64,000 nt of DNA from Obrimoposthia wandeli (GCA_977020255.1 CDROCS010006344.1:1-64000); one strand, 5' to 3'. Positions 5,658 through 28,151 are shown, counted from the first letter of the stretch. Notes: a model not told the origin generated them from the sequence alone. Program-made: numbers and translations.

Positions 5658-7586
5658 CTACTTAGCTTCTACGAACATACGACCACGCATTTCCATGTGT
5701 AGCGCATGGCAGAACCAGTTGCAGTAGTACCACTGAACCCCTGGCTTATCTGCGATGAAGGTGATGGATGATGTAGCCTGTGGCCCAATTTCCATCTGCA
5801 CACCATGGTTAGTCATACAGAAACCGTGAGTTACGTCTTCGATGTTATCCAGGTTAGTTACAACAACAGTTACTTCGTTGCCTTGCTTAACCTTAAAGTC
5901 AGAAAGACCAAACATCGGTGCAACAGAAGTCATGTAAACACGAACCTTGTTGCCGTCACGAATCACCTTGTTATCTGTTTCAAGAGTTACGCCGTCTTTC
6001 TTAGCCATCTCAACGGTAGGAGCAAAAATTGGATCATCACGAGTCCAAATCTTCTTAGGCTTAACCTTGCTGCGGTGAACCATGATGCAGTCATGAGGCT
6101 CAGCAAACGTTGGGCCATCGTGAACAAGCTTCATTTCATCGCCAGAAATATCGATCAACTGATCGTTTTCAGGACGTAGTGGGCCTACTGGTAAGAATCT
6201 ATCTTTCGAGAACTTACAAAGTACAACTAACCACTTACCATCTGCATCACGAGTTTCACCCATGGTGGTATGGTTGTGTCCTGGCTGGTAATGAACATCT
6301 AACTTCTGACGAAGGTAGTTAACTTTTTCACCGTTATAAGCGGCAACAGCGTCTTTTACATTCCACTTAGCAATCTGGCTATCTAGGAACAAGGTAGTAT
6401 AAGCATTACCCTTGTTATCAAATGCAGTGTGTAGTGGCCCTAAACCTAGTTCAGGTTCAGCAACAACAGTATCGCGAGGCTTGATTTTGTCAGCGAATAA
6501 ATCATCTAACTTATCAATAGCAATCAAAGAAACGGTAGGTGATAACTTACCATTGATCGCAAAGTACTCACCACCTGGAGAGGTGTTAACACCGTGTGGA
6601 GACTTAGGTACAGGGATATAACGAGTTAATTTAGACCCTTTACGACCATCCAATACAGGAATGTTATTGCCGTTATAGTTCTTGAACTTGCCCGCTTTAA
6701 CAGCCGCTTCACAGCGTGCTAGGCTGAAAACAACAACGTGGTCACGTTCAGAAGAAACCATTTCGCCAAGTGTCATGCCCATTTCAGAGTTATAACAAGT
6801 AGAAGCAAAATACTTACCGTCATAATCAGCGTCGGTATTATCTAGGTTGCCATCAACCATTACTTGGAAAGAAACTTCCATAGTTTCAGCATCGATAACG
6901 TTAAACAATGAACGGTAAGTGCTTACGTCTTCCATCGACGCTTTACCGTCGTTATTCATTGGGATTTCGAATTCGCCGTTACAAATCACATACTTAGTAT
7001 AAGGTACTTTTTGTACACGCAGACCGTGAACAGCTTGTACGTTAGGGACAGTAATGATTTTATCAGTTTTCATTACATCACAACGAATACGGGCAACACG
7101 AGAGTTAGCTTTATCGTTGATGAAAACATACTTACCGTCATAACGACCGTCTTGCATGCTCATGTGCGGGTGATGTGAATCACCTGCTAACAAATGAGCA
7201 CTATCGCCTTTAATACGCTTAGATTCGTTGGTTAGACCCCAGCCGGTAGCACTGTCGATATTGAATACAGGAATACGCATTAGCTCACGCATTGATGGAA
7301 TACCTAGGATGCGAACTTCACCTGAGTGACCACCACTCCAGAAACCATAGTATTCGTCTAGCTCACCAGGGTGAACGACAGCGCTATTCGCGGCTTCAGA
7401 CGCTTGAGCTTTTGCAGAAGCGGCGAACATTGCAGCGGTCATTGGAATTGCACCCGCAGCAGTGGCAACAGCACCAGCACCTAGAAAACCACGACGGCTT
7501 ACTTCTAGTTTGCTTTCTTCCTGGTTTACTACAGGAATATCAACGCTTGTATCAATCTGATCAACTGGATTTTCTTTGTTATCCAT
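5658..7586 (-). CDS. nosZ: TAT-dependent (clade I) nitrous-oxide reductase
   Basis: Twin-arginine SRRGFLG, CuZ motif DSHHPH, CuA motif [12 protein letters not shown]. Start placed at 7586 (AAGGA RBS); the ORF track start is 7607. Confidence 0.98.
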
Positions 7587-7656
7587 TTTATTTTCCTTAT
7601 CTATCATTAAAATTCTTTAGTTTTAATCTTCTGAGTCTTAATTCGTACTGCTCGTA

Positions 7657-9822
7657 CTAAGACGTCTTATCAATAATTCGAATGGCTTCTGCCGGTGTCG
7701 CTTTTTGTTTTTGGCGCTTAAGCTTTTTCTGCTTAGCAACAAGAGGCGGACACTTATTTTCATTTTGATACGTTACTTGGCAATCGAGGCAGTGATGACA
7801 TTCTCTTAAATTAATATCGCCATTTTTTTCGATAGCACCAATCTCACATTCAACCGCACATAGCTGGCAAGGTTCGCCGCATTCTTTGCGACGTTTTAGC
7901 CAATCGAATAAACGAATACCCGATGGAATTGCTATTGCGGCACCTAATGGGCAAACATAACGGCAATACACCTTACGACTGAATATGGATACAAAAATCA
8001 AAGCGCTGGCATAGAGAATAAACGGCCAGTCACGATCGAAATTTAATAAGAAAACGGTTTTAAAAGGTTCAACTTCGGCGTAAACCTCTGCAGTTTGCAA
8101 AGACTCTAAAGACAAACCAAATAGGGCGAAAAGAATTAAATATTTAACGGCCCATAAGCGTTCGTGTATGGCGAAAGGCACAACGTATTGAGGGATCTTT
8201 AACTTAACCGCTAGCTCACCGACTAATTCTTGTAAGGCACCAAAAGGGCATAACCAACCGCAGAAGATACCGCGTCCCCATAATAAGAGAGTCACTGCGA
8301 TGAACATCCAGATACAGAAGATGATGGGATCGAGTAGAAACGTTTCCCAATGAAAATCTGACATCAAGGCTTTCATAAACGTAAGCACGTTGACGATGGA
8401 GACCTGCCCTAAAGAATACCAACCGACAAAAAGCACTGTATAAATTAAGAATGCGCGACGGAAGGCGTGTAGAAAGCGTGGGAACGTCACTAACCAGTCT
8501 TGCAGGAAGATAACAATGATGATTAAAATCATGCTGATTATTAATATAGTAACCGGCACTTGTTTAGCAATCCAAACCTGCTGCCACATAGGTAGGTCAG
8601 AGATATTCTGTTCAACGATAGGGCGAGTTAGGTAGTCTTCAATTGGCATGTAATGAGTTTTGAAACTACTGAAAAGGCTATCCAGCGGTCCAGTCTGACG
8701 ACGAACTAATAATTCAATTTCCCATTCGCTACCCGGATCAAATTTGTGATGATCACGGATAACGAAAATAGACATTTCTTTAAAACGTGGAGAGCCTTCT
8801 GAATAAATATCATTAATACGATATTGGTCTAGATCACGAAAGCTGAAAACGTTATCACCTTGGTGAATTTGAATTCGATCAAAAATACCACCACGAACAT
8901 AACCCGAGCCTTTAAAAGAAAAGCCATTGCCCATGAGTGCAAGTGCGTGCTCACCTTCTTTCAATTCATTTTGTAGCCATTTAAATTCGCTATCGCCAAT
9001 AAGGTTGCGACCAATGGTCGGAATATTAAGCTGGGTATAATAAAGGTCGATGAATGCAGCATTAGCTTCTTCTTCTGAAAGAGGTTCTGCAAGTTCACCC
9101 TCAGTACCTGCAAAGGATTGTTCAATCTGATCATTGCTCAGCACCATGCGACGGATAGAACCATCACCAGTTAGCTTAAGCCAATTACCTTTAGTAAAAA
9201 CGTCTTGCTTGATATCAGCAATGGGTTGCTGGTCAACTTCATCGAATTCTATAATACCTTTATTTTTAGCCACCATTTTGGCAGCTCGCATAATGCCCAA
9301 ATTAACCACCATGACGGTGACAGTTGCACCTGATAGGCCATCAATGTGAATGCTTTCATCTGCTCCTTGGCCGCCAATCTTTACGAGGTCAGTCGACATC
9401 AATCCTGCGTATTGATCTGTAAACGTATGAAGTTTGTGCTCAGGAATACCGACTAATAAAATGGGTTCGTGATGTTCTAATACATTAACGGCGATGATTT
9501 TTCCGTCAGTATCGATCGATACTAGGCTATTTACGGGTTCGCCAGAGTAAGCAGGAATCAGTGCAATATCATCGGTTTCAAATGAATAGCCGATAATTGT
9601 GTCGTCTTTTATAATCGTCCAAACAGACAGCTCACCTTCTTCATCAGAGGACGATTTTATGCCAATCGATGATGCTTCTGGGAACGCCGCTTCTATTAAA
9701 GGTTCAGCAGGTTTTGCGGGGCTAATGATTAAGCCACCGGCCAATGCCATGGTAGACGTGAGAAACATAAGCATAAGCAAAAATATATTTTTGCTAAAAA
9801 TTGCATTACTTAACTTGTTCAC
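7657..9822 (-). CDS. nosR: NosR (FMN-binding, 4Fe-4S membrane regulator/electron donor)
   Basis: DGLSGATVT FMN-attachment motif, FCGWLCPFG and YCRYVCPLGA motifs, C-terminal CxxCxxC Fe-S motifs; directly upstream of nosZ. Confidence 0.96.
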   Translation of the reverse strand: MNKLSNAIFSKNIFLLMLMFLTSTMALAGGLIISPAKPAEPLIEAAFPEASSIGIKSSSDEEGELSVWTIIKDDTIIGYSFETDDIALIPAYSGEPVNSLVSIDTDGKIIAVNVLEHHEPILLVGIPEHKLHTFTDQYAGLMSTDLVKIGGQGADESIHIDGLSGATVTVMVVNLGIMRAAKMVAKNKGIIEFDEVDQQPIADIKQDVFTKGNWLKLTGDGSIRRMVLSNDQIEQSFAGTEGELAEPLSEEEANAAFIDLYYTQLNIPTIGRNLIGDSEFKWLQNELKEGEHALALMGNGFSFKGSGYVRGGIFDRIQIHQGDNVFSFRDLDQYRINDIYSEGSPRFKEMSIFVIRDHHKFDPGSEWEIELLVRRQTGPLDSLFSSFKTHYMPIEDYLTRPIVEQNISDLPMWQQVWIAKQVPVTILIISMILIIIVIFLQDWLVTFPRFLHAFRRAFLIYTVLFVGWYSLGQVSIVNVLTFMKALMSDFHWETFLLDPIIFCIWMFIAVTLLLWGRGIFCGWLCPFGALQELVGELAVKLKIPQYVVPFAIHERLWAVKYLILFALFGLSLESLQTAEVYAEVEPFKTVFLLNFDRDWPFILYASALIFVSIFSRKVYCRYVCPLGAAIAIPSGIRLFDWLKRRKECGEPCQLCAVECEIGAIEKNGDINLRECHHCLDCQVTYQNENKCPPLVAKQKKLKRQKQKATPAEAIRIIDKTS

Positions 9823-13445: not shown

Positions 13446-14741
13446 TTAAGCCAATACCTTATCTCTTTCAATATTTACAGCGTTAGTAATATGCAATGCG
13501 GGAGCAGTTTCAGTCGTATTAATGATGGACTGTTCAATATTCCTAATTACAAAATCCATCATCTTTTCTACCCTTCCTCCATCTAGTTGATGAGGAGAGC
13601 GCATTATTATTTCGATACCTTTGGGATGGCCAGCGAGAGTCACAAAAAGAGCGGTAGTTTCAAATTCTGGTGGAATAAAATAGCTCTTTATGGCACTAAA
13701 ATCAGAACCACTAAACTGATCAACGTTCAATAACCCTAAGTTTGAAATGACTCCGGTGGTTCTGAATAGACTGCTCTTTTGACGTTTTTCAATGAGCTTA
13801 TTATTGCTGTTTCGAATGGTTGACGTTGGCTTTAGTTTAATAAATAGAAATAATTTAAAGAAACGCGGGATTTCAGTTTCTTTCTTTTCAAGTAGTTGCT
13901 GTTGTATGTCTAAATTCCAATCTTCTGCCGTTGTATTTAGATTCACGTTAACCACAATTCCCCCAGTTAAGTTTGCTGTAGAATTTAAACCTTCACGGTG
14001 GGGGCGCATATCAACAGGTATTTGAAAGCGAACACAGTCTTCGCCATTAAGTCGCGCATAACGCGCTATTTCTAGAGCGACCTTTGCAAGTAGACCCTTA
14101 TGCTTACCTAAGAGTGTTTTACGTACCCAGCGAGAAGGCTTTTCTAAAGTTTGCACGGATTGAAGTTTTACTGATCCAGTCGCGGCTGATACATCTCTTC
14201 CAAGGCTGCTTGCTTTAGCGTGGTCATTCAGTGACAAGGCTAATTGCATGTCATTAATAGGGCTATTCTCTCCAACAGGGACTTCTCCGCGTAAACAGCG
14301 AAAAATGTCATTAGCAAAATGCAGCGTACCACGGCCATCCATTGCACCATGGTGCGATCGTATGATAATGAAATGTTTATTATCATCAGCATGCACTAAT
14401 ACTACTTCTGAGGTTGGTCCCGATCGTGCTGGTAGAGGCTTTAATAAAAATTCAGCGTTATCATTGCTACGTCCATCCCAATGACTTCTTACAACGCGTA
14501 ACGGCGTAGAGTGATCGCTATCGACCCATCGGCTAAAGCCTAGGTGGCCCACTAATTTTACTCGGCTGCCCGGATTTGCATAAGATGCTTTGATAACTGC
14601 TCTTCTTAGTTTTTCATCATCCATAGCGCCTTGGCCTTCGACAACCATTTGATTTACACAGGGGTTATGTAATAGCGTGATTTTTACTATCACCATGACA
14701 TAATAACGCTCAATAGTTGAAAGGGGTCTTGAATATGACAT
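13446..14741 (-). CDS. Stand-alone condensation-domain-like / CoA-dependent acyltransferase
   Basis: Canonical HHxxxDG (RSHHGAMDGRG), N-terminal RPLSTIER, and IPVDMR and VISNLG motifs of the C-domain/PapA5/alcohol acyltransferase superfamily. Confidence 0.7.
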   Translation of the reverse strand: MSYSRPLSTIERYYVMVIVKITLLHNPCVNQMVVEGQGAMDDEKLRRAVIKASYANPGSRVKLVGHLGFSRWVDSDHSTPLRVVRSHWDGRSNDNAEFLLKPLPARSGPTSEVVLVHADDNKHFIIIRSHHGAMDGRGTLHFANDIFRCLRGEVPVGENSPINDMQLALSLNDHAKASSLGRDVSAATGSVKLQSVQTLEKPSRWVRKTLLGKHKGLLAKVALEIARYARLNGEDCVRFQIPVDMRPHREGLNSTANLTGGIVVNVNLNTTAEDWNLDIQQQLLEKKETEIPRFFKLFLFIKLKPTSTIRNSNNKLIEKRQKSSLFRTTGVISNLGLLNVDQFSGSDFSAIKSYFIPPEFETTALFVTLAGHPKGIEIIMRSPHQLDGGRVEKMMDFVIRNIEQSIINTTETAPALHITNAVNIERDKVLA

Positions 14742-14762
14742 TAGAATTGCTCCACTTTATAA

Positions 14763-17700
14763 TTATTTTTTAGCATCTTGCCAGCCAGCTTCCCAACTAG
14801 AGTCAAGAACATCATCACGGTAAGGGTTCTTTTTCTTGTGTTTATTGCTGCTGCCTTGTTGGAAACCTCGTTGGTAGGCTTGCTCGACTAAATCAGTTGT
14901 ATTTTTTTTACGGCGAATTTTATTGACGAGTTCGGATGAGCGAAGCAACCATTGGTCGAGTAATAAATAACTGGCAGGTACTAGCAGCAAGCTAATAAAA
15001 GTCGCAAATAGCACACCAAAGGCTAGCGATACCGCCATGGGAATTAAAAATTGAGCTTGGATGCTGGTTTCTAAAATTAAGGGTGTTAAGCCCACAAACG
15101 TCGTTAAAGACGTTAAGATAATTGGGCGAAAGCGTTTTTTACCTGCGTCACATACCGCAATGAATACAGCTTGGCCTTGTTCTCTTTGCTGATTGATATA
15201 ATTCATCAATACAAGATTATCGTTCACCACAACACCACTCACGGCGACCATACCCACAAATGACCAGAGTGTTAGTTCTAGGTTCAAAAATAGGTGTCCG
15301 ACTAGCGAACCTAATAAACCAAAAGGAATGGCAAAAAGTACAAGCAATGGTTGGCTATAAGAAGCAAAAAGAACGGCCATCATTAGATACATCACTAAAA
15401 TGGCAACGAGATAACCTTTAGTTAATATTTTTAAAAATGACGCGATGCTTTTTTGTTGCCCTGCGGTATTCCAGCGAACGCCTTGATGATTATCAATAAT
15501 CTGATCGAGCTTGAATGTTTGTAATTCATTTTTAATTTGTGAAATAGAGTTTTTACTACTATCTACATAGGCACTAACGGATACGATTCGCTGTTGTTCG
15601 TAACGTTTAATATGATTACGTGCGGGCTGGTAATCGATACTAGCGATAGACGACAGGCTAACGTATTGATTGCTGGCTAACTTAATGGGTAAGTTTTCTA
15701 AGTACCACATTGACGAACGTTCATTTTCTGGTAAGCCTAACCAGACATTAATTTCGTCATTTTGGGTTTGAATATTCTGAACGTCACTGCCTTGATAAGC
15801 GCGATGGACCTGTGATAAAACCTGCTCTAAGGATAGGTCTAGGGCGATGGCATTATCTTTCAGTTTGATGTTGGCTTGTTGCTTAGCAGTGCTAATCGAA
15901 TCACGAATATCATAGCTTCCATCATATTCGGCAAGGATTTCTTTTAACTCTTTTGACGCGCGGGTTAGCTGTGCAAGGTCATAACCTGAAAACTCAATAT
16001 TAATATCGGGTTTAGCAGGATTTAAACTGGCACTAAACTTAAGATCTTCAATGTCGGTTATTGGGCCAGTAAGTTCACGCCAGCGTTTGACTAGCTCTTG
16101 GCCACTGTATTGACGGTTGTTACCAGTAGAAAGCTCTAGTGTTACTTGTGCACTATGATCTAGATTTTTATCAAGCTGTTGATTTGAGATTTTATTCTTA
16201 GGACCAATGACCGAATATATATGTAAAATAGACGGTGATGCCGGGAGCATAGTTTCTTCTTTCAACTGGTTGGCGGCAGTCACCAACTGTTGAATTGCTG
16301 CTTTCGTTTTATCTCGTGGAGATCCTTCAGGAAAAATAACATTAGCAATCACAACATCCGCTTCAATCGCAGAAAATAACGCGACTCGCATCCATCCTGT
16401 AGAGACAACGACCATGAAAATAATAAAAATCAAACTAAAGCTAACGATGACTAATCCTTTATTGTGAAGAGATTTTACCAATAGCGGCTGGTAAATATTT
16501 TCGATAAAGGCATCGAGATTATTGCTAAAAGAATTTTGTATTCTAGTGAGTACGTTAGGTTTTTTATTGGATGTTGGTTTATTTCCAGACAAGTGAGCCG
16601 GTAGTATGTAGATGGATTCTAATAATGAAAATATAAGGGTTAATATAACGACAATAGGAATTGCCTGCATTAACTTACCTTCGGGCCCTGGTAAAAATAG
16701 TAAAGGTAAAAAAGCGACTATACTGGTCGCGATAGCAAAAAATATGGGTTTATAAACCTGATAGGTTCCTTCTAGTGCACCTGCGCTACCATAGTTTCCA
16801 AGCTGGTTTTGTTGATGAACCGACTCTCCGACAACAACCGCATCATCGACTACGATTCCTAGAACTAATATAAATGCAAACAGCGAGATGACGTTAATAG
16901 AGACGTCAAAAAATGGCATCAAAAATAAGCTACCAAAAAAAGATACGGGAATGCCTAGGCTTACCCAAAATGAAAGGCGAGCATTTAAAAACAATAACAA
17001 CACAGTAAAGAGTAATAATAAGCCTGTTAATGCATTATCCAGCAATAAATCTATGCGGCTTTTAAAATGTTTAGAGTCATCTTGCCAAATATGCAATTTC
17101 ATATTATCGGGAATTTTAGCGTTACTAATGTAGCTGTTTAGGCTCTTTGAAATGTCCATTATATTTTGATCACCAATGCGATAAACATCGATGGATACTG
17201 CAGGTCTATTGTCGAAGCTAGCTTGGTTTTCATGGCTGTAGCGGTTGTCACTGATGGTCGCAATATCTTTTAATTTAATTTCTGCACCGTCACTGTTGGA
17301 TATAATAACGATATTTTCAAAACCTTCGCTACTCTCTACTTTTTCATCTGAGGTAATTAAAACATTACCTTCTTGAGTTTTTAGAAGCCCTCCCGGTAAC
17401 TGGCCTGATTGCTGTTGGATTAAATTAGTAATCTGGGAAAATGTTATATCGTATTTTTCTAAGTTGTGAGAAGGGACATTGATCTCAATTTTTGATTGTT
17501 TTATATCTTCAAGGTCAATGATGCTTATGTTCTCGAACTCGAGAAGATCTTGACGTACCTTTCTCATTATTTTTGCTAAATCCGCGTAGTTTGAATCGCC
17601 ACTTAGAATTAATTTAGCAACACGATTACGAACATTCAGTTCTTTTATCTCAGGTAAGCTTGCATCAATAGGCAAGGTATCAGAGCTTTGAATACGATTT

Positions 17701-18029
17701 TTAACTTCATCTAGAATGTTCTTTGTAATAAACCCATCGGCTACATCAATAGTGATAGAGCATAAACCTTCATATGCAGTTGAGGTAAGGTCTAGTGTGC
17801 CGGGGATATCGTAGATACGTTGTTCGATAGGTTTGCAGACGGTCGCTTCAACAGTTTCAACGGTAGCCCCTGGCAAAGTAGTTTGAATGCCGATTCTTTC
17901 TAGCGAGACATTCGGAATAAGTTCCATTCGTGTATCAGGAATAGAGATTAGCCCTAATACGAAGATAGAGAACATAAGCAAGTTAGCTGCAACAGGGTTG
18001 TTGACGAACCACTGAATGGAATAACGCAT
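14763..18029 (-). CDS. RND efflux permease (AcrB/AcrD/AcrF family) with an RMF-like C-terminal tail
   Basis: NPVAANLLM N-terminus, GIVVDDAVVVGE, GVVVNDNLVL and RFRPIILTSLTT; 1088 aa with two large periplasmic loops. Confidence 0.93.
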   Translation of the reverse strand: MRYSIQWFVNNPVAANLLMFSIFVLGLISIPDTRMELIPNVSLERIGIQTTLPGATVETVEATVCKPIEQRIYDIPGTLDLTSTAYEGLCSITIDVADGFITKNILDEVKNRIQSSDTLPIDASLPEIKELNVRNRVAKLILSGDSNYADLAKIMRKVRQDLLEFENISIIDLEDIKQSKIEINVPSHNLEKYDITFSQITNLIQQQSGQLPGGLLKTQEGNVLITSDEKVESSEGFENIVIISNSDGAEIKLKDIATISDNRYSHENQASFDNRPAVSIDVYRIGDQNIMDISKSLNSYISNAKIPDNMKLHIWQDDSKHFKSRIDLLLDNALTGLLLLFTVLLLFLNARLSFWVSLGIPVSFFGSLFLMPFFDVSINVISLFAFILVLGIVVDDAVVVGESVHQQNQLGNYGSAGALEGTYQVYKPIFFAIATSIVAFLPLLFLPGPEGKLMQAIPIVVILTLIFSLLESIYILPAHLSGNKPTSNKKPNVLTRIQNSFSNNLDAFIENIYQPLLVKSLHNKGLVIVSFSLIFIIFMVVVSTGWMRVALFSAIEADVVIANVIFPEGSPRDKTKAAIQQLVTAANQLKEETMLPASPSILHIYSVIGPKNKISNQQLDKNLDHSAQVTLELSTGNNRQYSGQELVKRWRELTGPITDIEDLKFSASLNPAKPDINIEFSGYDLAQLTRASKELKEILAEYDGSYDIRDSISTAKQQANIKLKDNAIALDLSLEQVLSQVHRAYQGSDVQNIQTQNDEINVWLGLPENERSSMWYLENLPIKLASNQYVSLSSIASIDYQPARNHIKRYEQQRIVSVSAYVDSSKNSISQIKNELQTFKLDQIIDNHQGVRWNTAGQQKSIASFLKILTKGYLVAILVMYLMMAVLFASYSQPLLVLFAIPFGLLGSLVGHLFLNLELTLWSFVGMVAVSGVVVNDNLVLMNYINQQREQGQAVFIAVCDAGKKRFRPIILTSLTTFVGLTPLILETSIQAQFLIPMAVSLAFGVLFATFISLLLVPASYLLLDQWLLRSSELVNKIRRKKNTTDLVEQAYQRGFQQGSSNKHKKKNPYRDDVLDSSWEAGWQDAKK

Positions 18030-19222
18030 TACAAGGCCTCAGCGACGGTAGGCGTCTTAAGCTTATTTTCTTTTTCTGAACGATGGCGAGCCTTGGGATC
18101 GACCAATAGCCCATCAACAAGGTTACTGAATGAGCCTGTGACAATACGTTCCCCTAATTTTATGCCTGAGGTAATATAAATTTTATCTTTTCCTCGATAG
18201 ATCACATCAACAGATCTTCGTGACAAACGATCTGCTGTGCTAATCGTCCACAGTTTGTTCTCGGCTTGTAAGCTTTCCCTGGGTAAAATATGTAAATCTT
18301 TTTGTAAGTTACCGGTAATCGTTGCTTGGATAAATGAACCAGGTAGCAGTGGTTTAGTCGCTGAATTATTACTATCACTATTATTGACAGTGGCGATGAC
18401 ATAGAGCAGTTGATTTTTATCTCTTTCACCCTCCGTGCGGGTAATCGTGCCGTGCCAAGTGATGCTGTTATCTTGGAAGTTTTGAATTAATACATTAGGG
18501 AAAACATCCAGCTCCTCTGTTTTCTGTTCCGAATATTGCAGGCCTAATAATGATATTTGATGATCATTGAGAGGGAGTCGTATTTCTACTGTTTCAGTAC
18601 CATAAACTTTTGCTAGCTCTTGGCTTGCCTGCAAGTACTCTCCTGTATGAATATTTGCCAGAATAACTTTGCCACTAATGGGTGCCTTGATAGAGGTTTT
18701 CTCTAATTGTTTTTGAGCATAACTTAAGGCTGCTCTGGCAGCTTCTACTTGGCTATTGGCGTATCGCAACTGCGGAACATACAAGGCGTAGTCTGAAGCG
18801 TTTCTACCGGCACCTTTCTTAGCGACGCGGGCTTTGGCTTTGGTTTCAAAATAATGTAATTTCGCTTGATCTAAGCTTGATTGATTTTGTGCGATGTCGA
18901 GAATGAAAGGCTGCTGGTCGAGCTGAACCAGCAATTCATCTTGTTGAACTAGGCCGCCATTAATTAGTTGTGCGTTGACAAAAGTTACCAGTCCAGGAAC
19001 TTCGCTTGTTATGTGTCGAATCTGTGAAGGCGTTGCTTTTCCTCGACTAAAGATCGGGATAGATATTTCAGCTGATCTTGCCACGGTGTAAGGAACGACA
19101 GGAATGTTAACGATAATCTCAGACTTTTCTGGAATAGGTTTATTATCCGTTAATAGATAAATAGAACCTGCCGCTATAAAAAGCAGTGCAATGAGCTTTA
19201 TGTTGAAACTAAATGAATTCAT
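18029..19222 (-). CDS. RND efflux periplasmic adaptor (MFP) subunit
   Basis: N-terminal TM anchor, lipoyl-like halves (ITSEVPGLV; IKAPISGKV), coiled hairpin; TAATG overlap with the permease gene. Confidence 0.9.
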   Translation of the reverse strand: MNSFSFNIKLIALLFIAAGSIYLLTDNKPIPEKSEIIVNIPVVPYTVARSAEISIPIFSRGKATPSQIRHITSEVPGLVTFVNAQLINGGLVQQDELLVQLDQQPFILDIAQNQSSLDQAKLHYFETKAKARVAKKGAGRNASDYALYVPQLRYANSQVEAARAALSYAQKQLEKTSIKAPISGKVILANIHTGEYLQASQELAKVYGTETVEIRLPLNDHQISLLGLQYSEQKTEELDVFPNVLIQNFQDNSITWHGTITRTEGERDKNQLLYVIATVNNSDSNNSATKPLLPGSFIQATITGNLQKDLHILPRESLQAENKLWTISTADRLSRRSVDVIYRGKDKIYITSGIKLGERIVTGSFSNLVDGLLVDPKARHRSEKENKLKTPTVAEAL

Positions 19223-20231
19223 TATGGTTTTTATCTTCGATTAAATTATTTTTCCAGTCGTTCAAGCACTTCTGTGTCAAACTTATATCCTGACAGATCA
19301 TTGGGTGTAACTTTAAACCTAGCGTTAGCTGTCCATGCCATTCCATGATACCAGTCGACACGGGATAGTTTTTAGTACCGATCCCACAGCTAACCCATAC
19401 TTCATCTGTATTTTCAGCTGGATTTTTATCACCTTGTAGCGGCCACGCTCCTAAGTAACTATAAGAACCCGCATAGAAATTCTTTTTGCTAATACTATTG
19501 TAAATATAACGAACCCCAGGTTTGCCAACCAACTTTCCAATATGCGCTAACTTCCAAGTGCTCCAGTGTTCTTTTAGTTTTATCTTGCTTTTAATTTCTT
19601 CCTGTAACTGCTTGGGGGTAATGTAGTTATTTAAGCAGATATTAATACCAGAGGAATAATTGCTCGTATCATTACCTAGAGAAATGGCACCACGGAGGTT
19701 TACGGGATAAAACCAATAATAATTTTGATTACCATCGATTAGGTTGTCTGCAATCGCTTTATTGAGAGACCACATTAGAAAGGTACTGAAAGCAACGCGA
19801 TTCTTCTTCGCATTTTTTTTAATCTGTAATGTGCTTTCTTTATCAAAAAAAGTATTCAAAATAGCGGCAGAATTATTATTGCTGCAAGGAAAATTGTTCT
19901 TCCAACGGATACTTTTAGAGGGGGTGTAGGTAGATTTTTTGTTTCTCTTCTTCTCTAATTTTCTGATCTGGTAGAGCTTCCAAGAACTTGGTTCTGTTTT
20001 CTCACCACTTTGTGGAAGTTGACGACAAGGGTAACCTTGTTCTCTTAAAATGGTCGCTATACCTCCGATACCATCCATTTTACTGTGTGGAAATGTGTGC
20101 CATTGAGTATCACCATTGGTTTTGTTCATAGGACCAATGTTCATTGCATCGCTGATGCCTAGCTCTTTTCTTACATCAAACCACATTGCGATGTAGTCTT
20201 TGGGGGATTTTGAAATTTTAGAGGCTTTCAT
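19209..20231 (-). CDS. Hypothetical protein, condensation/acyltransferase-like
   Basis: xHxxxDG motif (FPHSKMDGIG), YPVNLRG motif and a C-terminal SYLG segment resembling acyltransferase/C-domain folds. Confidence 0.5.
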   Translation of the reverse strand: MKASKISKSPKDYIAMWFDVRKELGISDAMNIGPMNKTNGDTQWHTFPHSKMDGIGGIATILREQGYPCRQLPQSGEKTEPSSWKLYQIRKLEKKRNKKSTYTPSKSIRWKNNFPCSNNNSAAILNTFFDKESTLQIKKNAKKNRVAFSTFLMWSLNKAIADNLIDGNQNYYWFYPVNLRGAISLGNDTSNYSSGINICLNNYITPKQLQEEIKSKIKLKEHWSTWKLAHIGKLVGKPGVRYIYNSISKKNFYAGSYSYLGAWPLQGDKNPAENTDEVWVSCGIGTKNYPVSTGIMEWHGQLTLGLKLHPMICQDISLTQKCLNDWKNNLIEDKNHNEFI

Positions 20232-20241
20232 GCTTCTCTCC

Positions 20242-21351
20242 TTATAAACGTGAAGGTTCTAAATAAAATAGTGTGGGTGCATCCTGTTCCGCTTGTTGCT
20301 TTAGGTACTCTGGTTTATCACCATAAATGGCAAGGTAGTGATTGCTGGTTAGGGTATGGCTTTTAAAGCCTTGTAGAGCGTTATGTAGAGGATCACGCTT
20401 ATCAAAACCAATGATCAATGCATCGAAAGACGAGTCTTTATATTCACATAGGATATTAGATAACATACTGCTGAGTATGGCTGGCTGATTATCTTTGATT
20501 AGAATCGAGTGCAAGCTAATATAGTTGGCTAAAGTTCCTGCTGTAGGCAGCTTTAACCCACCTAATACTTTACTCATTATGTTGTTAGCATGGCGTAGAA
20601 TTTTTATGCTGCCGTGATAAGACAAGAATCGGGTTTGTTTAAATTCTTTTTGGTCCCAAGCACCGACAACGCCAATTAATTCTTGATTATTGTAGTATAA
20701 AAAATAATCACTAATACTCAGATTGCGATAATACGCATCTTGACCGCCGATTTTTTTAAAATCATAACAAGGATAGAACTCTTTATATTTTGCATTCAGA
20801 TCAAAAAATCGTTGGATGTCGTCGATATCATCTGCAGAGGCACGTCGAACCTGCTTGCATGATGGTGAATATGATTTGTTGAGTGCTACCATGTGTGTAA
20901 TGAACTGGCCAGCATCGTGATAAGTGGGTAAGGATAGTCGCCCGCTGCCAACGGTATCGACAGAAGCTTTATTCTCATCAAGAATCACGGTTTGCATCCA
21001 TTCATCTTGCATTAATTCTTTATACTTCTTGAACAGACGGAATAACGTACGACCGCCTTTATAATCTTGATGAATTCTTAAGTCATTGCCATAGCGTGTT
21101 AAGCGTTTTTTGCCATTAACGTAGACTTCTCTTTTTCCTATACTGAAAGAGGCGACCAATCTGCTATTGTGAAGATCTTCCATTAACCAGACCTCTGGTT
21201 CGCTTGTTGTGACACCTGTAGCGTGAAAGAAATTTGGCTGCCGTTCAAAATTTAAACGAATACTGCCTTCTTGTGGAGTTTCATTTATTAATCGCAATAA
21301 TGCAGATGAATCTTCAGCTTGAGCTAAGCGAATATTGTATCGCAGGCTCAT
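20242..21351 (-). CDS. GNAT-family acyltransferase (tandem-GNAT size)
   Basis: IRLAQAED N-terminus, motif A-like DLRIHQDYKGG, N-x-x-S; 369 aa is consistent with a double GNAT fold. ATGA overlap with the GH3 gene. Confidence 0.65.
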   Translation of the reverse strand: MSLRYNIRLAQAEDSSALLRLINETPQEGSIRLNFERQPNFFHATGVTTSEPEVWLMEDLHNSRLVASFSIGKREVYVNGKKRLTRYGNDLRIHQDYKGGRTLFRLFKKYKELMQDEWMQTVILDENKASVDTVGSGRLSLPTYHDAGQFITHMVALNKSYSPSCKQVRRASADDIDDIQRFFDLNAKYKEFYPCYDFKKIGGQDAYYRNLSISDYFLYYNNQELIGVVGAWDQKEFKQTRFLSYHGSIKILRHANNIMSKVLGGLKLPTAGTLANYISLHSILIKDNQPAILSSMLSNILCEYKDSSFDALIIGFDKRDPLHNALQGFKSHTLTSNHYLAIYGDKPEYLKQQAEQDAPTLFYLEPSRL

Positions 21352-23048
21352 GCGGGTTCACCGGTCTTCGTCTGTGATTCATTATTTTTTGCATCTTGAG
21401 AATTATCAAGACCTTTGTTCATTAAGAAATTTTGGTTTTGCCATAAAATCAACGGCTCTACTTTAATATTGCCTTTTACCATGCCCTGCTCAACCTTATG
21501 GTGAGCGTATAAAGCTAAAGCATCCTGTTTAATAGAAACTCGAGCAGGGTCTAGCTGTCCAAGTTCACGTGCTAGCTGATAGTGAAAATGTTGTGAAAGC
21601 ATCTTCTCTAAAGACTGCGCAAGTTGATCTTCTCTTGCTATTAAGCAGTCTTCAGTTAAATCACTGTCATTTTCACAAAGTAATACATAATAGGGCTTAT
21701 ATTGCTGTTTGTTTGCCGGCATTGCGATGAGCGTGATCGGTGTAATACCTTCTTCAAGATTAAAGTCATTTAGTAATTGCACTGCCGTTTCTGGTGATAG
21801 TTTCTCTCCGACCATATCGGTGCCGTCTATTCGACCAATAAATTCAAAACAAGGGCAGCTATTAATAAACCCTGTCACTTTTAATTGATCTTTCATGGCG
21901 TAGCGTAACAAGCCATTAGCAGAGCTAATAATAGGACGAACACACATTCCTTCTGTCAGTTGCCAGCTAAGCATAATTTTTTGACTGGACAGCTCTTCAA
22001 ACTCATAGAAGTGGCTAGTGACCGCGAGCGGGAATTGATTTCTATAAGGGATACTCGTTACCCCCTCAGTTGCCCATAGCCCCTTACCCTGGAATTCACT
22101 ATGGGGAAATATCCGCCTCAATTTATCAGCCCAAATCTTAGATGAGGATGTATCCCAGGCACTTATTAGTGCTAATTTTGGCCAGATAGAGGCTGTGAAT
22201 TTCGCATCAATTTTGCCATCCCATTCATATAATATTTTAGATGACGCTACATTCTTTGGTGTTTCTATTTTTTCTAAACCAGAATATTTACTCGGCCATT
22301 CGCCAGAGGCTAATACTTGGGTAATGTCATTTTTATGGAGCTGAATAAACTCCAATAGACTCAGAGCAAAGGTCGGACTCCAAACTGAAATAAAGCTTAA
22401 ATCCGAGCATGCTAGAAGGTAGCAAGCGGTTGCGAAAAATGATTCGTCTGAAGACTCTGCCAACGAAATTGATTCTGGTACGGCCATCGTCCCCGTCATA
22501 AATACCTGCTTCCACCAAGGGAGCAGCTGTAGATCGTTATTGATGCTCGCCGTTAATTTATTACGTAAATCACTCGGCACCCAAGAAAGAGACCAGTAAT
22601 GTTTTCCATTTTTTATCTTTGGATAATTACGGTACATATCTGCTAACCAAGGAGCAATCGCATTATCTAATTCTTCAAGAAATGGCTTTGTGTAAGGGAT
22701 CCATTTGATTTTTGAAGTAGAACCACTCGTCGGCTGGTAGCGTGTGCAATCATTATTTGTTAAAAGATTAATCTGCTCAGTTTGTTGTTGTTCTATTTGA
22801 GCGGACCAGTAATCATAATCTGTAATAGGGACTTGGTTTTGAAAGTCTTGCAAGCTGCTATTAGAAGAAAGGTTGTGCCGAATGCCATTTTCGCTACCGA
22901 CAATATTAGCTATAATATGTGATAACAATATTTTCTGTGTCGATTCAATATTCCTACAGGCAATAATAAATTTATCTTCACCTTTTCTTGAAAGTAGATA
23001 AGATGCCTGGTGTAGGGCGCGGCTTATGAGAGCGTGTATTATTTGCAT
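21348..23048 (-). CDS. GH3 (auxin-responsive promoter) family acyl-adenylating amide synthetase
   Basis: VPITDYD, PTSGSTSKIKWIPYT (P-loop-like), ATEG, FYEFE, GLLRYAMKD, FIGR and GEKL motifs of GH3/ANL enzymes. Confidence 0.88.
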   Translation of the reverse strand: MQIIHALISRALHQASYLLSRKGEDKFIIACRNIESTQKILLSHIIANIVGSENGIRHNLSSNSSLQDFQNQVPITDYDYWSAQIEQQQTEQINLLTNNDCTRYQPTSGSTSKIKWIPYTKPFLEELDNAIAPWLADMYRNYPKIKNGKHYWSLSWVPSDLRNKLTASINNDLQLLPWWKQVFMTGTMAVPESISLAESSDESFFATACYLLACSDLSFISVWSPTFALSLLEFIQLHKNDITQVLASGEWPSKYSGLEKIETPKNVASSKILYEWDGKIDAKFTASIWPKLALISAWDTSSSKIWADKLRRIFPHSEFQGKGLWATEGVTSIPYRNQFPLAVTSHFYEFEELSSQKIMLSWQLTEGMCVRPIISSANGLLRYAMKDQLKVTGFINSCPCFEFIGRIDGTDMVGEKLSPETAVQLLNDFNLEEGITPITLIAMPANKQQYKPYYVLLCENDSDLTEDCLIAREDQLAQSLEKMLSQHFHYQLARELGQLDPARVSIKQDALALYAHHKVEQGMVKGNIKVEPLILWQNQNFLMNKGLDNSQDAKNNESQTKTGEPA

Positions 23049-23875
23049 TATGAGGGCTCCATCATAAGTTCTTCTTTCTTTTCAGTATCCGTATTTGTTT
23101 CTGCTATAACTTTCACTGTGGAATGTTTTACTACAGATCTCTTCTTTTTGAGCGACAGCATATTCTTACGCACAAAATTCCACATCATATGTATAGATAC
23201 TTCACCTACACAGGGCAATTCTGTTCCTTGCTGCCAGGATGGATTGAGCTTTGTGAAATGACGAATTTTTGGATTGTCGTCTGTCATATCGGTTGTTATT
23301 TCTGCGACATCATCCTTTAAATATTGATAATCATTACCAAAATTTAATAGTCGGTTTTCTTTGTTGTAAGCTGATGGATATAGTTGCTCGCAGTACTCAT
23401 CAACAATAGATTCTAGCTTGATGTTATTTTTTTTATGACTAGGGTAGTGTTTTGGAAAGTTATTAGTCAGTAATAAATAAGTCTTATACCCTTTAGATAT
23501 CAATAGCCAAAATACAGAGGTCTTTGGGTTTTTTATTTTTGTTTTTAATAACTGTTTAACAAATGTTTTCTGTAGTGCTTTATTCCCCCAGAATTCTTTT
23601 TTTACTACGGTATCTCCACTAAAGATGCCTATAGATCTCTCACCATCTTTCATTATTTCTAGTTCAGTCCATGTGCTGAAACCTACTATTTTATCACTAG
23701 ATTTTTCTTGTAAAATAATGACGCCTGTCTTCTTCCCCATATCAGTAACAAAGTTGTGGAGGTCGGCATTATGATAGTACTGAACAAATACCTTATGCAT
23801 CTCTAATAGTTGAGGTACAGATATGTGTTTTATTTTTTTAAAACAGGCCGTTAGTTTTGTTTTATCATTTTTCAT
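23048..23875 (-). CDS. Conserved hypothetical protein, probable GNAT-like fold, coupled to the GH3 gene
   Basis: IVGFST, FSGDTVV-x3-WG, WLLISKGYKTY and NPSWQQGTELPC motifs; TAATG overlap with the GH3 gene. Start placed at 23875 (ORF track 23917). Confidence 0.55.
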   Translation of the reverse strand: MKNDKTKLTACFKKIKHISVPQLLEMHKVFVQYYHNADLHNFVTDMGKKTGVIILQEKSSDKIVGFSTWTELEIMKDGERSIGIFSGDTVVKKEFWGNKALQKTFVKQLLKTKIKNPKTSVFWLLISKGYKTYLLLTNNFPKHYPSHKKNNIKLESIVDEYCEQLYPSAYNKENRLLNFGNDYQYLKDDVAEITTDMTDDNPKIRHFTKLNPSWQQGTELPCVGEVSIHMMWNFVRKNMLSLKKKRSVVKHSTVKVIAETNTDTEKKEELMMEPS

Positions 23876-24262
23876 AAAAATCTCACGCACGCAGAAATTC
23901 AGGCAAGAGAATACCATCAGAAAATACTGAGGAATTGTCCATTTATAATGTTATTAATAGCGAGTTGACTAAGTGTTTGTTTAGTTTTCTAAGACTGAGC
24001 TTATCGGTCGAGTGATTTTCATGATTGCGCATCCATTCTTTTTTAGACTAGTAATGATTTATTATTATTTTTTATTATTCAGCTTACATGCTGATTTAAC
24101 GCCGCCAGTAAATCATAGTTAAAAAAGATTAAAAGTAATTTCTATCGTAATTAATACGTTAGTACCTCAAATATTACGGGGCAGGGTAAGTGTTTTGTAA
24201 ATGGCGAAATAGGAGAATAAATATCCTTTGTTAAGGAAGTTATTTTTGCTACGGGAGGGTAG

Positions 24263-24304
24263 TTATAGAAAGTGTCAGTCTTTATTATAGAAAGTGTAAA
24301 GTGT
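24263..24304 (+). repeat. 13-bp direct repeat with 22-bp period plus a partial third copy
   Basis: TTATAGAAAGTGT at 24263-24275 and 24285-24297; AAAGTGT again at 24298-24304. Confidence 0.7.
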
Positions 24305-24321: not shown

Positions 24322-24666
24322 TTACAGCATTATCGAACAGGCTCCTATTGCTCGGCTCGCGATAGTTGCTTGCTGGCAAGTTGAAATGCAGTTATCTAAT
24401 TTCTTTCTAGTCGATGTTTTATTAAATACTAGGTTCGCTGAGAATTTATGACAGCGACGAGGGAAGGCATTACGATAGCACTGGCGCGCATCACCACTTT
24501 TCGAAATACAGAGCTCAGCATTACTCAGCATTGTAGATGAATCGGATATCGTTTTATGTTTTGTGATTTCAATGAATTGTTGCGACTGACATCCGGCTAT
24601 TACAATCAATGAAACGATTAATAAAAAGTGGGCAATATGTTTTTGCATGAGTCTTCTCGTAGGCAC
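24322..24666 (-). CDS. Small Cys-rich putative lipoprotein
   Basis: Signal peptide with lipobox IAGC followed by six further Cys in about 90 aa. Confidence 0.6.
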   Translation of the reverse strand: MPTRRLMQKHIAHFLLIVSLIVIAGCQSQQFIEITKHKTISDSSTMLSNAELCISKSGDARQCYRNAFPRRCHKFSANLVFNKTSTRKKLDNCISTCQQATIASRAIGACSIML

Positions 24667-25359: not shown

Positions 25360-26469
25360 CTATTTTATCGATGCAGATATTTCCACCTGTATATCTTCAC
25401 CATTAAATTGAGAGGCTGTGATTGTGCCTCCTATGCCATTAGGGAGGCTCTCTTTAATGCTTGCTTTTACTTTGATAATTTTTTGGCAGCCCAAGTTTTC
25501 ACAGGTCGGAAAGAGTAATGGTGAGTTTAAATTGAGAAATAAGTTGTCATCCGCAAAAACAGAGAGGCTGGTTCCTTCAGGAGTATTCGCTTCATCGGTC
25601 CGTAGAAAGATAGCGTTAGGATGATTAAAGTCTGCATAGATTAATTTCTTAGATGGCTGAATAACTTCTTGAGTTGTATCTGGGGAGTTCAGGCTAGTGA
25701 CGGTATTGATATTTTCAATGCGTAAGCAATCCATTGCCGTTTCTTCAGTATCCAAAAAAGGTATATCGTTGATTGTGAACTCAGTCGTGAGCTCTCTGGA
25801 TTGTGAAAAATTTGTTGAGTCGCTAACCTTTACTCCCTTGATATCAAGGTTATTGATTTGATCCCATGACTCTGGATAAGAGAATTGTGGAGGAAAACTG
25901 GAAGATCGATTCTTGATTAACTGACTCGCATTGCCTTGTAAGCTTAAATTATGATCAAGTTCCAAGCTGGCCTGACTGTTTAAAGGCCAGGTTCCCATAT
26001 GGCCGTATGCTTCTTTAAGCTGCATCGAATCGTCAGGTAATTCAAAGAAATATGAGAGTACATTGCCCTTGATTGAGAATGCAGATAAAGAACTGAGGAG
26101 TTCATCTCCCACAAAAGAAGGAGTAAAAAATACACTATCAAGAATTACATTAGGCTTTCGCTTAATAGAACACTCCCTCATTAAATAGCTTTCGTTTTTT
26201 GCTTGGCTAATGCTAATGAGCTGCCGAATTTTATGTTTAGATTTCTCTATTGATTTGATGTTAGAGCTATCTTCTTCGTAGTAAGTGACTTCACTGGTTG
26301 CGTCAATGTCTAACATCCAAATGCCAACAGGGGATTCAGTCGATAGGTTGGTATTCACATCCGGCAGTGAGCTCGAACCTGAGGAACTTTTATCATCCTC
26401 AAGAGGCCAGCAGGCTGAAAGGCATAATAAACTGGTTAAAAGTAGGGTGTTTTTAAATAAGGCTAACAT
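25360..26469 (-). CDS. Hypothetical lipoprotein (islet cargo)
   Basis: Lipobox LSAC after MLALFKNTLLLTSLLC, then a Ser-rich linker. The ORF-track start (26586) lies inside the tRNA, so the real start is probably 26469 or 26487. Confidence 0.7.
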   Translation of the reverse strand: MLALFKNTLLLTSLLCLSACWPLEDDKSSSGSSSLPDVNTNLSTESPVGIWMLDIDATSEVTYYEEDSSNIKSIEKSKHKIRQLISISQAKNESYLMRECSIKRKPNVILDSVFFTPSFVGDELLSSLSAFSIKGNVLSYFFELPDDSMQLKEAYGHMGTWPLNSQASLELDHNLSLQGNASQLIKNRSSSFPPQFSYPESWDQINNLDIKGVKVSDSTNFSQSRELTTEFTINDIPFLDTEETAMDCLRIENINTVTSLNSPDTTQEVIQPSKKLIYADFNHPNAIFLRTDEANTPEGTSLSVFADDNLFLNLNSPLLFPTCENLGCQKIIKVKASIKESLPNGIGGTITASQFNGEDIQVEISASIK

Positions 26470-26500
26470 GACGAAGATCCGTTTCATTTCTAGCAGGCAT

Positions 26501-26534
26501 AAAAAAAGCCCACATTTTTCAATGCAGGCTTTTA
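26501..26534 (-). terminator. Terminator downstream of tRNA-Phe
   Basis: Minus strand AAAAGCCTGCATTGAAAAATGTGGGCTTTTTTT: GC stem plus U-tract. Confidence 0.7.
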
Positions 26535-26541
26535 GAATAAA

Positions 26542-26617
26542 TGGTGCCCGGAGACAGAATCGAACTGCCGACACGAGGATTTTCAATCCTCTGCTCTACC
26601 GACTGAGCTATCCGGGC
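26542..26617 (-). tRNA. tRNA-Phe (GAA)
   Basis: GCCCGGATAGCTCAGTCGGTAGAGCAGAGGATTGAAAATCCTCGTGTCGGCAGTTCGATTCTGTCTCCGGGCACCA; 76 nt, folds as a cloverleaf, encoded CCA. Confidence 0.98.
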
Positions 26618-27035: not shown

Positions 27036-28151
27036 TTAGTTTAAATCTTCTAAACGAATCTTGTTCAGCAGCGTTTTAACGGGGGCTGCTAAGCCTAGTT
27101 CTGATGGTTGCTGTGGATTGTACCAGTGCTGTGCTGATTCCCCTATGGCATCAGGTCGCTTGCTCAGCTGAATCAGGACTGGGCTGATGTGTAGGTGGTA
27201 GTGGCTAAACGTATGACGAAAGCTATTCCAGTTTTCTTGCTCAAAGGCTAGTTCGCCGAATAGGGCCTGACTACGGCTAAGGGCATCTTCTTCCATTGCT
27301 AGCTCAGGAAAGCTCCAGAGTCCGCCCCAGATGCCTTGCTGAGGTCGTTGCTCTAACAATATATGTCCATCAGGGTCTTGTAGCATAATTAACTGAATGT
27401 GTTTTTCTGGCTTGTCTTTTTTAGGTTTTGAATTGGGATAATCTTTGGGGTTCCCTTGAACATTTGCTTTGCAATCGGGTGCTAGTGGGCAGATACCGCA
27501 TTGCGGCTTGCTGCGAGAGCAAAGAGTGGCCCCCATATCCATCATCGCTTGAGTATATTCGTTGCAGCGTTTATTGGGAGTGAGGCGCTCTGCGATAAGC
27601 CAAAGCTCTTTTTGAACAGAAGTAGTGCCAGGCCAGCCTTCAATCGCGAAGTAGCGGCATAATACGCGCTTTACGTTACCGTCTAATATCGCGGCATTAA
27701 TACCCATGCTGATAGAAGCAATGGCGCCTGCGGTTGATCGACCGATCCCCGATAACTCTACCAAACCCTCTACTGAGCGTGGAAATTCGCCATTGAAGTC
27801 AGTACTCACTTTTTTTGCACAAGCGTGTAAATTTCGAGCTCTGGCGTAATACCCCAGCCCAGTCCAGAGATGTAAGACCTTATCTTGTTCTGCGTTAGCC
27901 AGATCATGAACGGTAGGAAACTCTTCCATGAAGCGTTCGAAGTAAGGGATTACAGTTGCAACTTGTGTTTGTTGCAACATGACTTCAGAAATCCATACTT
28001 TATAAGGGGTTATATCTTGCTGCCAAGGTAGGTGTTTACGTCCATTTTCTTCGAACCAGTTCAGAACGGCTTGACTGAATAGCTTGTCGTTAGAAGTAGT
28101 AGTGCTAGAGGGGATAGAGTTTGGCGAAGGCTTGTTATTGGCAGCAGGCAT
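27036..28151 (-). CDS. mutY: A/G-specific adenine glycosylase
   Basis: [25 protein letters not shown], HhH-GPD ([20 protein letters not shown]) and Fe-S motif C-x6-C-x2-C-x5-C. Confidence 0.97.

Follow-up and report, generated by a model that had tools for sequence, protein, structure and literature searches.

A seven-gene operon on the minus strand of a 64,000-nucleotide stretch from Obrimoposthia wandeli (GCA_977020255.1 CDROCS010006344.1:1-64000; hereafter the window) probably encodes a self-contained, carrier-protein-independent pathway in which an acylated amide lipid is made and handed to a dedicated RND (resistance-nodulation-division) pump. Genes A to G, at 13446-23875, specify a GNAT-fold protein, a GH3-family amide synthetase, a second probable GNAT protein, a condensation-like acyltransferase, a periplasmic adaptor, an RND permease and a further condensation-like acyltransferase (Table 1). 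A first-pass annotation of the window had read this set as acyl-amide synthesis coupled to export. As far as the sequence allows, this biosynthesis-plus-export reading is supported by the protein families, by their conservation and by gene fusions, which strengthen it, while the product itself is a prediction. The closest matches to the GH3 protein come from Oleispira metagenome-assembled genomes (75-82% identical), indicating that the sequence belongs to an Oleispira relative.

The open reading frame (ORF) listing of the window confirmed that the seven genes are co-oriented and abut or overlap. A/B (at 23048) and E/F (at 18029) share a single base in TAATG-type junctions, B/C overlap by 4 bp (21348-21351) and D/E by 14 bp (19209-19222), and the spacers between C and D and between F and G measure 10 bp and 21 bp. 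The ORF of gene A extends to 23917; we kept the originally proposed start at ATG 23875, because homologues are ~255-270 aa long and comparison of the Oleispira loci shows that GAGATTTTTATG is conserved in front of this codon. Pfam detected no AMP-binding, PKS (polyketide synthase) or PP-binding domain in the seven products, and as no intergenic gap exceeds 21 bp there is no space for a small carrier gene, so that the claimed lack of a carrier protein, an adenylation domain and a PKS held. The combination of adenylation domain and carrier protein that defines a non-ribosomal peptide synthetase (NRPS) assembly line is not found in the operon. With 38.9% G+C against 42.1% in the rest of the window, and a minimum of 33.3% in gene A, the operon is indeed AT-richer than its surroundings, as had been remarked, but the difference is small (~3 GC points).

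Table 1. Features of the operon and its leader. Positions are counted from the first letter of the window. The last column gives the number of loci, out of 80 compared, in which the gene was found by clustering of all ORFs; these counts are lower bounds, as many contigs end early.
Feature	Position	Strand	Length (aa)	Description	Loci (of 80)
Gene A	23048..23875	-	275	Soluble acyltransferase with modelled GNAT fold and family-specific C-terminal extension	74
Gene B	21348..23048	-	566	GH3-family ATP-dependent acyl-acid amido synthetase (Pfam, motifs)	80
Gene C	20242..21351	-	369	Soluble protein, probable tandem GNAT acyltransferase	69
Gene D	19209..20231	-	340	Basic soluble condensation-domain/CAT-superfamily acyltransferase, HxxxDG (HSKMDG)	30
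Gene E	18029..19222	-	397	RND periplasmic adaptor (membrane fusion protein), single N-terminal membrane anchor	61
Gene F	14763..18029	-	1088	RND permease, AcrB/MexB type, divergent	54
RMF-like tail of F	14766..14921	-	52	Cytoplasmic C-terminal residues (aa 1037-1088)	
Gene G	13446..14741	-	431	Soluble condensation-domain-like acyltransferase, HHxxxDG (HHGAMDG)	17
Leader/promoter region of A	23876..24300	-		Conserved non-coding blocks across Oleispira loci	

A scan of one genome per species returned 494 loci with a relative of B, and the 80 most similar to the Oleispira query were fetched. Among related loci the gene order of the window and its single strand are almost always kept, and because this order recurs in dozens of genera the arrangement lies far beyond chance. 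Co-occurrence of the genes in other genomes, which the first-pass annotation had proposed as a check on its reading, is thus strongly borne out by these 80 loci. Carriers include Oleispira, Thalassolituus, Bermanella, Oceanobacter, Moritella, Hahellaceae, Allohahella, Pleionea and Exilibacterium as well as Alcanivoracaceae, Oleiphilaceae, Marinobacter, Moraxellaceae, Aquabacterium, Myxococcota and Desulfobacteraceae. The flanking genes vary by genus: T. maritimus has GlmU and ZnuA beside the block, Marinobacter has an aminotransferase along with EgtB/D-like genes, and Moritella and Agitococcus have different flanks again; the block therefore behaves as a transferable module. A thiamine pyrophosphate (TPP) enzyme and an aldehyde dehydrogenase encoded downstream were rejected as cluster members, their synteny being confined to Oleispira.

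The best-defined enzyme is B. Its GH3 N, M and C domains all exceed the Pfam gathering score (144.2, 56.2 and 28.8 bits against a cutoff of 23.6; E-values 6.7e-42, 3.6e-15 and 2.1e-6), and a profile of B matches plant GH3 structures (AtGH3.15, E-value 1.5e-15), with which its three nucleotide-binding motifs (TSGSTSKIK, GLWATEG and RYAMKD) align. These motifs (an SSGTxxxxxK P-loop-like, a YxSSE-type and a YRxGD-type motif) are kept in 77-80 of 80 homologues. HYWSLSW and SVWSPTF are signatures of the GH3 lineage of B. Judged by its domains and motifs, B is a complete GH3 adenylating enzyme predicted to adenylate a carboxylate and then form an amide. It shares the three-domain family and the nucleotide-binding motifs with plant GH3s such as AtGH3.15, GH3.5, GH3.12/PBS3 and JAR1; unlike them, it is similar only distantly, at the profile level, and belongs to a bacterial operon coupled to export.

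The only characterized bacterial GH3 that we found in the literature is OlsH (2025) of Singulisphaera acidiphila, which lies in a different cluster and uses ATP to couple a free fatty acid to ornithine, giving N-acyl-ornithine with neither coenzyme A (CoA) nor acyl carrier protein (ACP); in the same ornithine-lipid pathway the alpha/beta-hydrolase OlsI attaches the second acyl chain, and the authors expect other amino acids for other bacterial GH3s (PMC12493201). The same study detected no OlsH product in living E. coli cells, for which its authors offer a low level of free fatty acid as a possible reason. The present operon resembles OlsH/OlsI in having a bacterial GH3, for which ATP-dependent formation of an N-acyl amide independently of CoA and ACP would be shared in principle, and in also holding an enzyme for a second acylation. 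In contrast to OlsH/OlsI, the OlsI alpha/beta-hydrolase and the OlsG methyltransferase are lacking (no alpha/beta-hydrolase is encoded among the seven products or the flanking genes), and two GNATs, two condensation-like enzymes and an RND pump are present. Neither the tree nor the survey published for OlsH contains the lineage of B; the published criterion for orthology to OlsH is at least 30% identity and at least 70% coverage.

All seven family calls of the first-pass annotation stand, those of A, C, D and G only at the level of fold or sub-threshold profile matches. None of these four gives a Pfam or NCBIfam match at an E-value of 0.01 or better, and they were assigned through family alignments built from the related loci. 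Like B, they are predicted to have neither a transmembrane (TM) segment nor a signal peptide, and D is markedly basic. Among the curated NCBIfam models, none corresponds to A, B, C, D or G.

Gene A has zero Pfam or NCBIfam matches, and PDB profile searches with A and with D returned nothing meaningful. The AlphaFold2 model of A (predicted local distance difference test score, pLDDT, 87) gives it a GNAT fold, as Foldseek against the PDB places the first ~140 aa on GNATs, including 2hv2, AAC(2')-Ia and Eis, with E-values of ~1e-6. E219 and C222 in the C-terminal extension are invariant in the family alignment, and a profile search found 1433 representative proteins of this family at E-values of 1e-10 or better. 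Hhalign connects A with the N-terminal GNAT of C. In the family of C, 5 of 26 members match Pfam Acetyltransf_9 (best E-value 1.7e-5) and others Acetyltransf_1, _3 or _7; C itself reaches 12.8 bits against a GNAT gathering score of 25. The profile of C has GNAT matches in the PDB which, though weak, cover aa 3-101 as well as aa 168-252; with such a match in each half, the protein is probably a tandem GNAT. A role of A and C in the N-acylation of amino acids is plausible by analogy with OlsB, GlsB and NasY/FeeM, GNAT-fold N-acyl amino acid synthases with which they share the fold; they differ from these enzymes in matching none of their Pfam families at E-values up to 1, and A also in its extension.

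D and G are condensation-like acyltransferases with catalytic-type motifs. The AlphaFold2 model of D (pLDDT 91.7) shows the two-lobed condensation fold, with NRPS epimerization (E), cyclization (Cy) and condensation (C) domains as top Foldseek matches (E-values ~1e-10), and G is linked to this fold by homology between the C-terminal halves of the two proteins (hhalign 95.8%). H49, D53 and G54 are invariant in the family alignment of D, so that the second His, the Asp and the Gly of the motif are kept and the first His is absent. In G, H130, H131, D135 and G136 are invariant among 15 sequences, and HHxxxDG is found in 17 of 17 homologues; 9 of 15 family members match Pfam Condensation (best E-value 4.4e-5), others match AATase or WS_DGAT, and the family profile weakly matches the motif region of VibH. 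The gathering score of Pfam Condensation (30.6) is not reached by G (14.9 bits), and D has zero matches. Likeness to VibH, WS/DGAT and PapA5 thus lies in the fold of D, in the HHxxxDG of G and the HxxxDG of D, and in weak matches to Condensation, AATase and WS_DGAT; unlike those enzymes, D is a shortened form of 340 aa in which the first His is missing, all matches stay under the Pfam gathering score, and no carrier-protein partner is encoded.

The export part of the operon is assigned more firmly. E matches TIGR01730 RND_mfp with 133 bits against a cutoff of 94.9, as well as Pfam HlyD_3 and HlyD_D23, and a TM segment is predicted at aa 3-26. F matches Pfam ACR_tran (E-value 3.7e-152) and has MexB, MdtB, AdeB-type pumps and AcrB as PDB relatives, and its best NCBIfam subfamily models stay far under their cutoff (397 vs 1250). 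Permease and adaptor thus belong to the same families as in AcrAB-TolC and MexAB-OprM; the operon differs from these systems in the sub-cutoff subfamily scores of F, in the tail described below, in the adaptor-enzyme fusion of Moritella and in the lack of a gene for an outer-membrane factor. The latter had been noted before and was borne out: none turned up in the parts of the 64-kb window that were scanned, namely the operon and its flanks (Pfam), nor in the other inspected loci.

F ends in a domain resembling ribosome modulation factor (RMF), which matches Pfam RMF with an E-value of 3.5e-10 and NCBIfam PRK14563 with 40.4 bits against a cutoff of 40, and which aligns over the whole length of RMF with residues 2-47 of the E. 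coli protein (6h4n_v; phmmer E-value 9.4e-6). Whereas RMF itself is a free small protein that binds the 30S subunit, in F it forms an extension of a 12-TM permease. The motif AYxxGfxxG ... NPYxDDVLxxSWEAGWxDA is kept in 37 of 51 RND permeases examined, spanning several gammaproteobacterial families (Oleispira, the T. maritimus group, Hahellaceae, Alcanivoracaceae and Marinobacter); the tail is absent from Moritella, from the T. alkanivorans group and from the unrelated pumps of Desulfobacteraceae and Moraxellaceae, and its presence is independent of that of D or G. A search with the tail alone returned only close Oleispira relatives. Such permeases are annotated at JGI as "AcrB/ribosome modulation factor", and we found no study of an RND-RMF fusion in the literature. 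The tail could serve as a docking site for the soluble enzymes or as a link to the ribosome.

A coupling between synthesis and transport is suggested by the gene fusions. In Moritella, D and the adaptor form one polypeptide of 786-837 aa (L081 12940-15357 in Moritella viscosa, and L025, L028, L029 and L082). In one example of 805 aa, identity to D is 49% over residues 3-335, and identity to E is 31% over residues 415-783, a part that contains the TM anchor. Because the D part precedes the anchor, D would lie on the cytoplasmic side. The fusion is publicly annotated as an RND adaptor only.

Domains of family A likewise occur in fusions with lipid enzymes or transporters. In P0265 and P0341 the domain is attached to the C-terminus of an MMPL transporter, and in P0336 its partner is an MFS transporter; P0278 joins it with a fatty-acid desaturase, P0235 with both PAP2 and a desaturase, and P0292 with a JmjC/cupin hydroxylase. 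Three distant contexts with enough contig all have GH3 nearby, the contigs of three more family-A members being too short. In the first, a radical SAM gene is followed by an MMPL::A fusion and GH3; the second combines GH3 with a Rieske oxygenase, a desaturase, an A::desaturase fusion, FA_hydroxylase and a glycosyltransferase; and the third contains GH3, A, a LolA-like protein, MMPL and FA_hydroxylase. The A-GH3 pair thus lives among lipid-modifying and lipid-transport genes, and its recurrence in such distant contexts indicates that it is an old functional unit. Together, the fusions of enzymes with transporters and with lipid enzymes point to a lipid that would be made at the membrane and exported. 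Locus L085 (7751-12432) is among the A-domain observations; its GH3 is 29% identical to B over the full length and keeps the lineage signatures. A 387-aa protein encoded after this GH3 was considered as a relative of C and rejected as unrelated.

Beside the A-GH3 core, a membrane translocator is encoded in most loci with enough contig, across lineages. It is an RND pump with adaptor in Gammaproteobacteria, an ABC ATPase in Aquabacterium, and an MprF-type flippase domain with adaptor and RND in Desulfobacteraceae, where two weak AMP-binding-like ORFs are added; in Myxococcota, a radical-SAM enzyme and condensation-like proteins stand beside the core. One Desulfobacteraceae metagenome-assembled genome (L037 8916-20146) encodes A, GH3, the two AMP-binding-like ORFs, a protein with the MprF-type flippase domain (LPG_synthase_TM), the adaptor and an unrelated RND permease. 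The MprF-type flippase domain, and the LolA-like protein with MMPL in the distant context, would also be expected if the operon modified an envelope macromolecule (lipid A, a lipoprotein or a peptidoglycan precursor) with the RND protein acting as flippase or extractor, and tandem GNATs such as Fem and MprF do use envelope precursors as substrates. We nevertheless regard such a function as very unlikely: the enzymes are all predicted to be soluble and cytoplasmic, with no periplasmic catalytic domain, and the individually annotated genes of the window and of the other loci include no known envelope-precursor gene linked to the cluster. If the modified molecule were a lipid, this explanation would merge with the lipid pathway proposed here.

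The same lipid contexts bear on the question whether the product could be a non-lipid secreted molecule, such as an NRPS-independent siderophore, a signal or an antibiotic, which the GH3, GNAT and condensation-like enzymes would build from small acids and amines for secretion through the RND pump. Some siderophores are exported by RND pumps, and GNATs and free-standing condensation domains occur in siderophore pathways, VibH being a weak match of G. Moreover, GH3s also use small aromatic and alicyclic acids, namely indole-3-acetic acid (IAA), jasmonic acid (JA) and isochorismate (PMC12493201). However, in the window and in ~14 other individually annotated loci the cluster is accompanied neither by a hydroxylase or decarboxylase nor by a TonB-dependent receptor or uptake transporter. 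Comparing the ORFs of the 80 loci all against all gave no further widely shared gene family, and the A domain is fused to enzymes and transporters of lipids. A product of this kind therefore appears improbable to us.

Many carriers degrade hydrocarbons or lipids (Oleispira, Thalassolituus, Alcanivoracaceae, Marinobacter, Oleiphilaceae and Agitococcus), and an AraC-family regulator is divergently encoded in 13 loci. Both observations would fit a detoxification system analogous to the conjugation of auxinic herbicides by plant GH3s: GH3 would couple organic acids that are toxic or in surplus, e.g., those formed when hydrocarbons are oxidized, to amino acids, and the conjugates, once capped by the acyltransferases, would leave through the RND pump; xenobiotic acids are indeed conjugated by plant GH3 enzymes (PMC12493201). 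We give this explanation little credence, as four extra bond-forming enzymes in a fixed order exceed what conjugation and efflux need, and the fusions of D to the adaptor and of A to desaturases, PAP2 and MMPL point to the building of lipids rather than their disposal. In addition, the cluster is also present in Myxococcota, Aquabacterium and Desulfobacteraceae.

We therefore favor synthesis and export of an acylated amide lipid, which would be a lipoamino acid or aminolipid made at the cytoplasmic face of the inner membrane. Like OlsH, B would use ATP to activate a carboxylic acid in its free form, most probably a fatty acid, and would then link this acid to an amine, for example an amino acid. 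A and C may add or transfer further acyl or aminoacyl groups, and D and G may attach ester- or amide-linked acyl groups. D would act last, docked on adaptor E, so that the finished amphiphile enters pump F. The product may be either released, as a surfactant or signal, or kept in the outer membrane. Reliance on fatty acids in free form would fit the degradation of alkanes and lipids by many carriers, although the locus sample is biased toward relatives of the query.

Several points weigh against this pathway. An outer-membrane factor is not encoded. The assignments of the GNAT and condensation-like proteins rest on fold or sub-threshold profile matches, and condensation-like domains normally use carrier-bound donors, of which the operon encodes none. 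The enrichment in oil and lipid degraders is biased, as the loci were chosen by similarity to the Oleispira query. Finally, OlsH surveys at 30% identity or more list no order that holds Oleispira, Thalassolituus, Marinobacter or Moritella, which makes the transfer of substrates from OlsH weak.

The overall logic has a counterpart in the mycobacterial FadD/PapA/MmpL loci for phthiocerol dimycocerosate (PDIM), sulfolipid-1 and polyacyltrehalose, which combine an adenylating enzyme, stand-alone HHxxxDG acyltransferases and an RND-superfamily exporter. Those modules use fatty acyl-AMP ligases (FAAL) and PKS with carrier proteins, and MmpL works without an adaptor. The operon shares the arrangement of these functions in one locus, with unrelated parts; it differs in that its adenylating enzyme is a GH3, in that no carrier is encoded, and in its AcrB-like pump with adaptor.

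That the pathway was unassigned, as the first-pass annotation suggested, agrees with the lack of curated NCBIfam families, with the public names of the orthologues ('hypothetical protein', 'N-acetyltransferase domain-containing', 'peptide synthetase') and with the literature, where we found no study of this cluster among work on GH3 with RND, Marinobacter, Oleispira, Thalassolituus or Moritella. The glycine-glucolipid literature names none of these genes, and GH3, RND and condensation genes are absent from the N-acyl-tyrosine (NasY) clusters. According to a 2019 review, the biosynthesis of marine lipoamino-acid biosurfactants was not described; the review lists an orphan proline lipid of Alcanivorax dieselolei. 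What would be new here is the joining of GH3-dependent lipid-amide synthesis with acyltransferases and an RND pump, in an enzyme set differing from that of the OlsH cluster.

Beyond the operon itself, A and GH3 might mark a large, phylum-spanning class of carrier-independent lipid-amide pathways wired to exporters, of which the oil-degrader version would make a new lipoamino-acid-type surfactant or outer-membrane lipid. We put this forward as a tentative extension, which we rather doubt than expect. The wiring would consist of the D-adaptor fusion, the fusions of A with MMPL and MFS transporters, and the RMF-like tail as a possible docking or regulatory module. If this were true, Oleispira, Thalassolituus, Alcanivoracaceae and Marinobacter would possess a lipid whose biosynthesis has never been described, and the wider A-GH3 module would extend to the ~1400 family-A representatives (E-value 1e-10 or better), set in contexts of lipid modification and lipid export. 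Bacterial GH3s are numerous and a function is known for one, OlsH, so that the operon offers a concrete, testable candidate pathway in cultivable strains, among them Thalassolituus maritimus DSM 24913, Agitococcus lubricus DSM 5822, Marinobacter halodurans and Moritella marina ATCC 15381. Judging from the fusions of enzymes with transporters, the last biosynthetic enzyme may channel its product directly into the RND pump, and ATP-dependent carrier-free chemistry would be attractive for the production of N-acyl amino acid surfactants.

The operon had also been described as lying just downstream of a tRNA-Phe att repeat. The repeat is real: the 3′ 47 nt of the tRNA-Phe gene (26542..26617) and its terminator hairpin recur upstream of the operon with 89% identity over 87 nt (copies at 24921-25007 and 26502-26588), and the hairpin shows compensatory changes. 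However, the copies enclose a separate 1.58-kb insert (25008-26541), and the operon lies outside it. The insert holds a single ORF (25360..26586) of at most 408 aa, for which neither Pfam nor PHROG gave a family and which cannot be recognized as an integrase. A genomic island at tRNA-Phe that would include the operon was rejected, as the repeat bounds another element, the GC dip is modest and the adjacency to tRNA-Phe is shared by relatives. In 6 of the 7 closest Oleispira-type loci a tRNA-Phe lies 0.6-4.4 kb upstream of A (the seventh, L004, has ~3 kb of tRNA-free contig upstream of A), and the downstream TPP-enzyme and aldehyde-dehydrogenase genes are syntenic in 4 of the 7. The position of the operon is therefore ancestral within the genus, and tRNA-Phe is a hot spot for small insertions.

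The leader of the operon has no match to an Rfam family. In it, the 13-nt sequence ACACTTTCTATAA occurs twice without mismatch as a direct repeat (24297-24285 and 24275-24263) with a spacing of 22 nt, a candidate binding site for a regulator. The repeat is also found in L004 and partly in L007. Further upstream, a 114-aa ORF (24322-24666, minus strand) with a signal peptide and a lipobox-like IAGC is kept only in the Oleispira loci L003 and L004 and belongs to no family.

Among the neighboring genes, MutY (27036..28151) adjoins tRNA-Phe, and a CHASE8-HAMP-PAS-GGDEF-EAL protein (28228..30633, minus strand) overlaps a YfiR/HmsC-like gene (30630..31181, 33% GC). Downstream of the operon, NosZ (5658..7607, minus strand) adjoins a NosR-like FMN-binding/4Fe-4S membrane protein (7657..9822), indicating a nos denitrification cluster.

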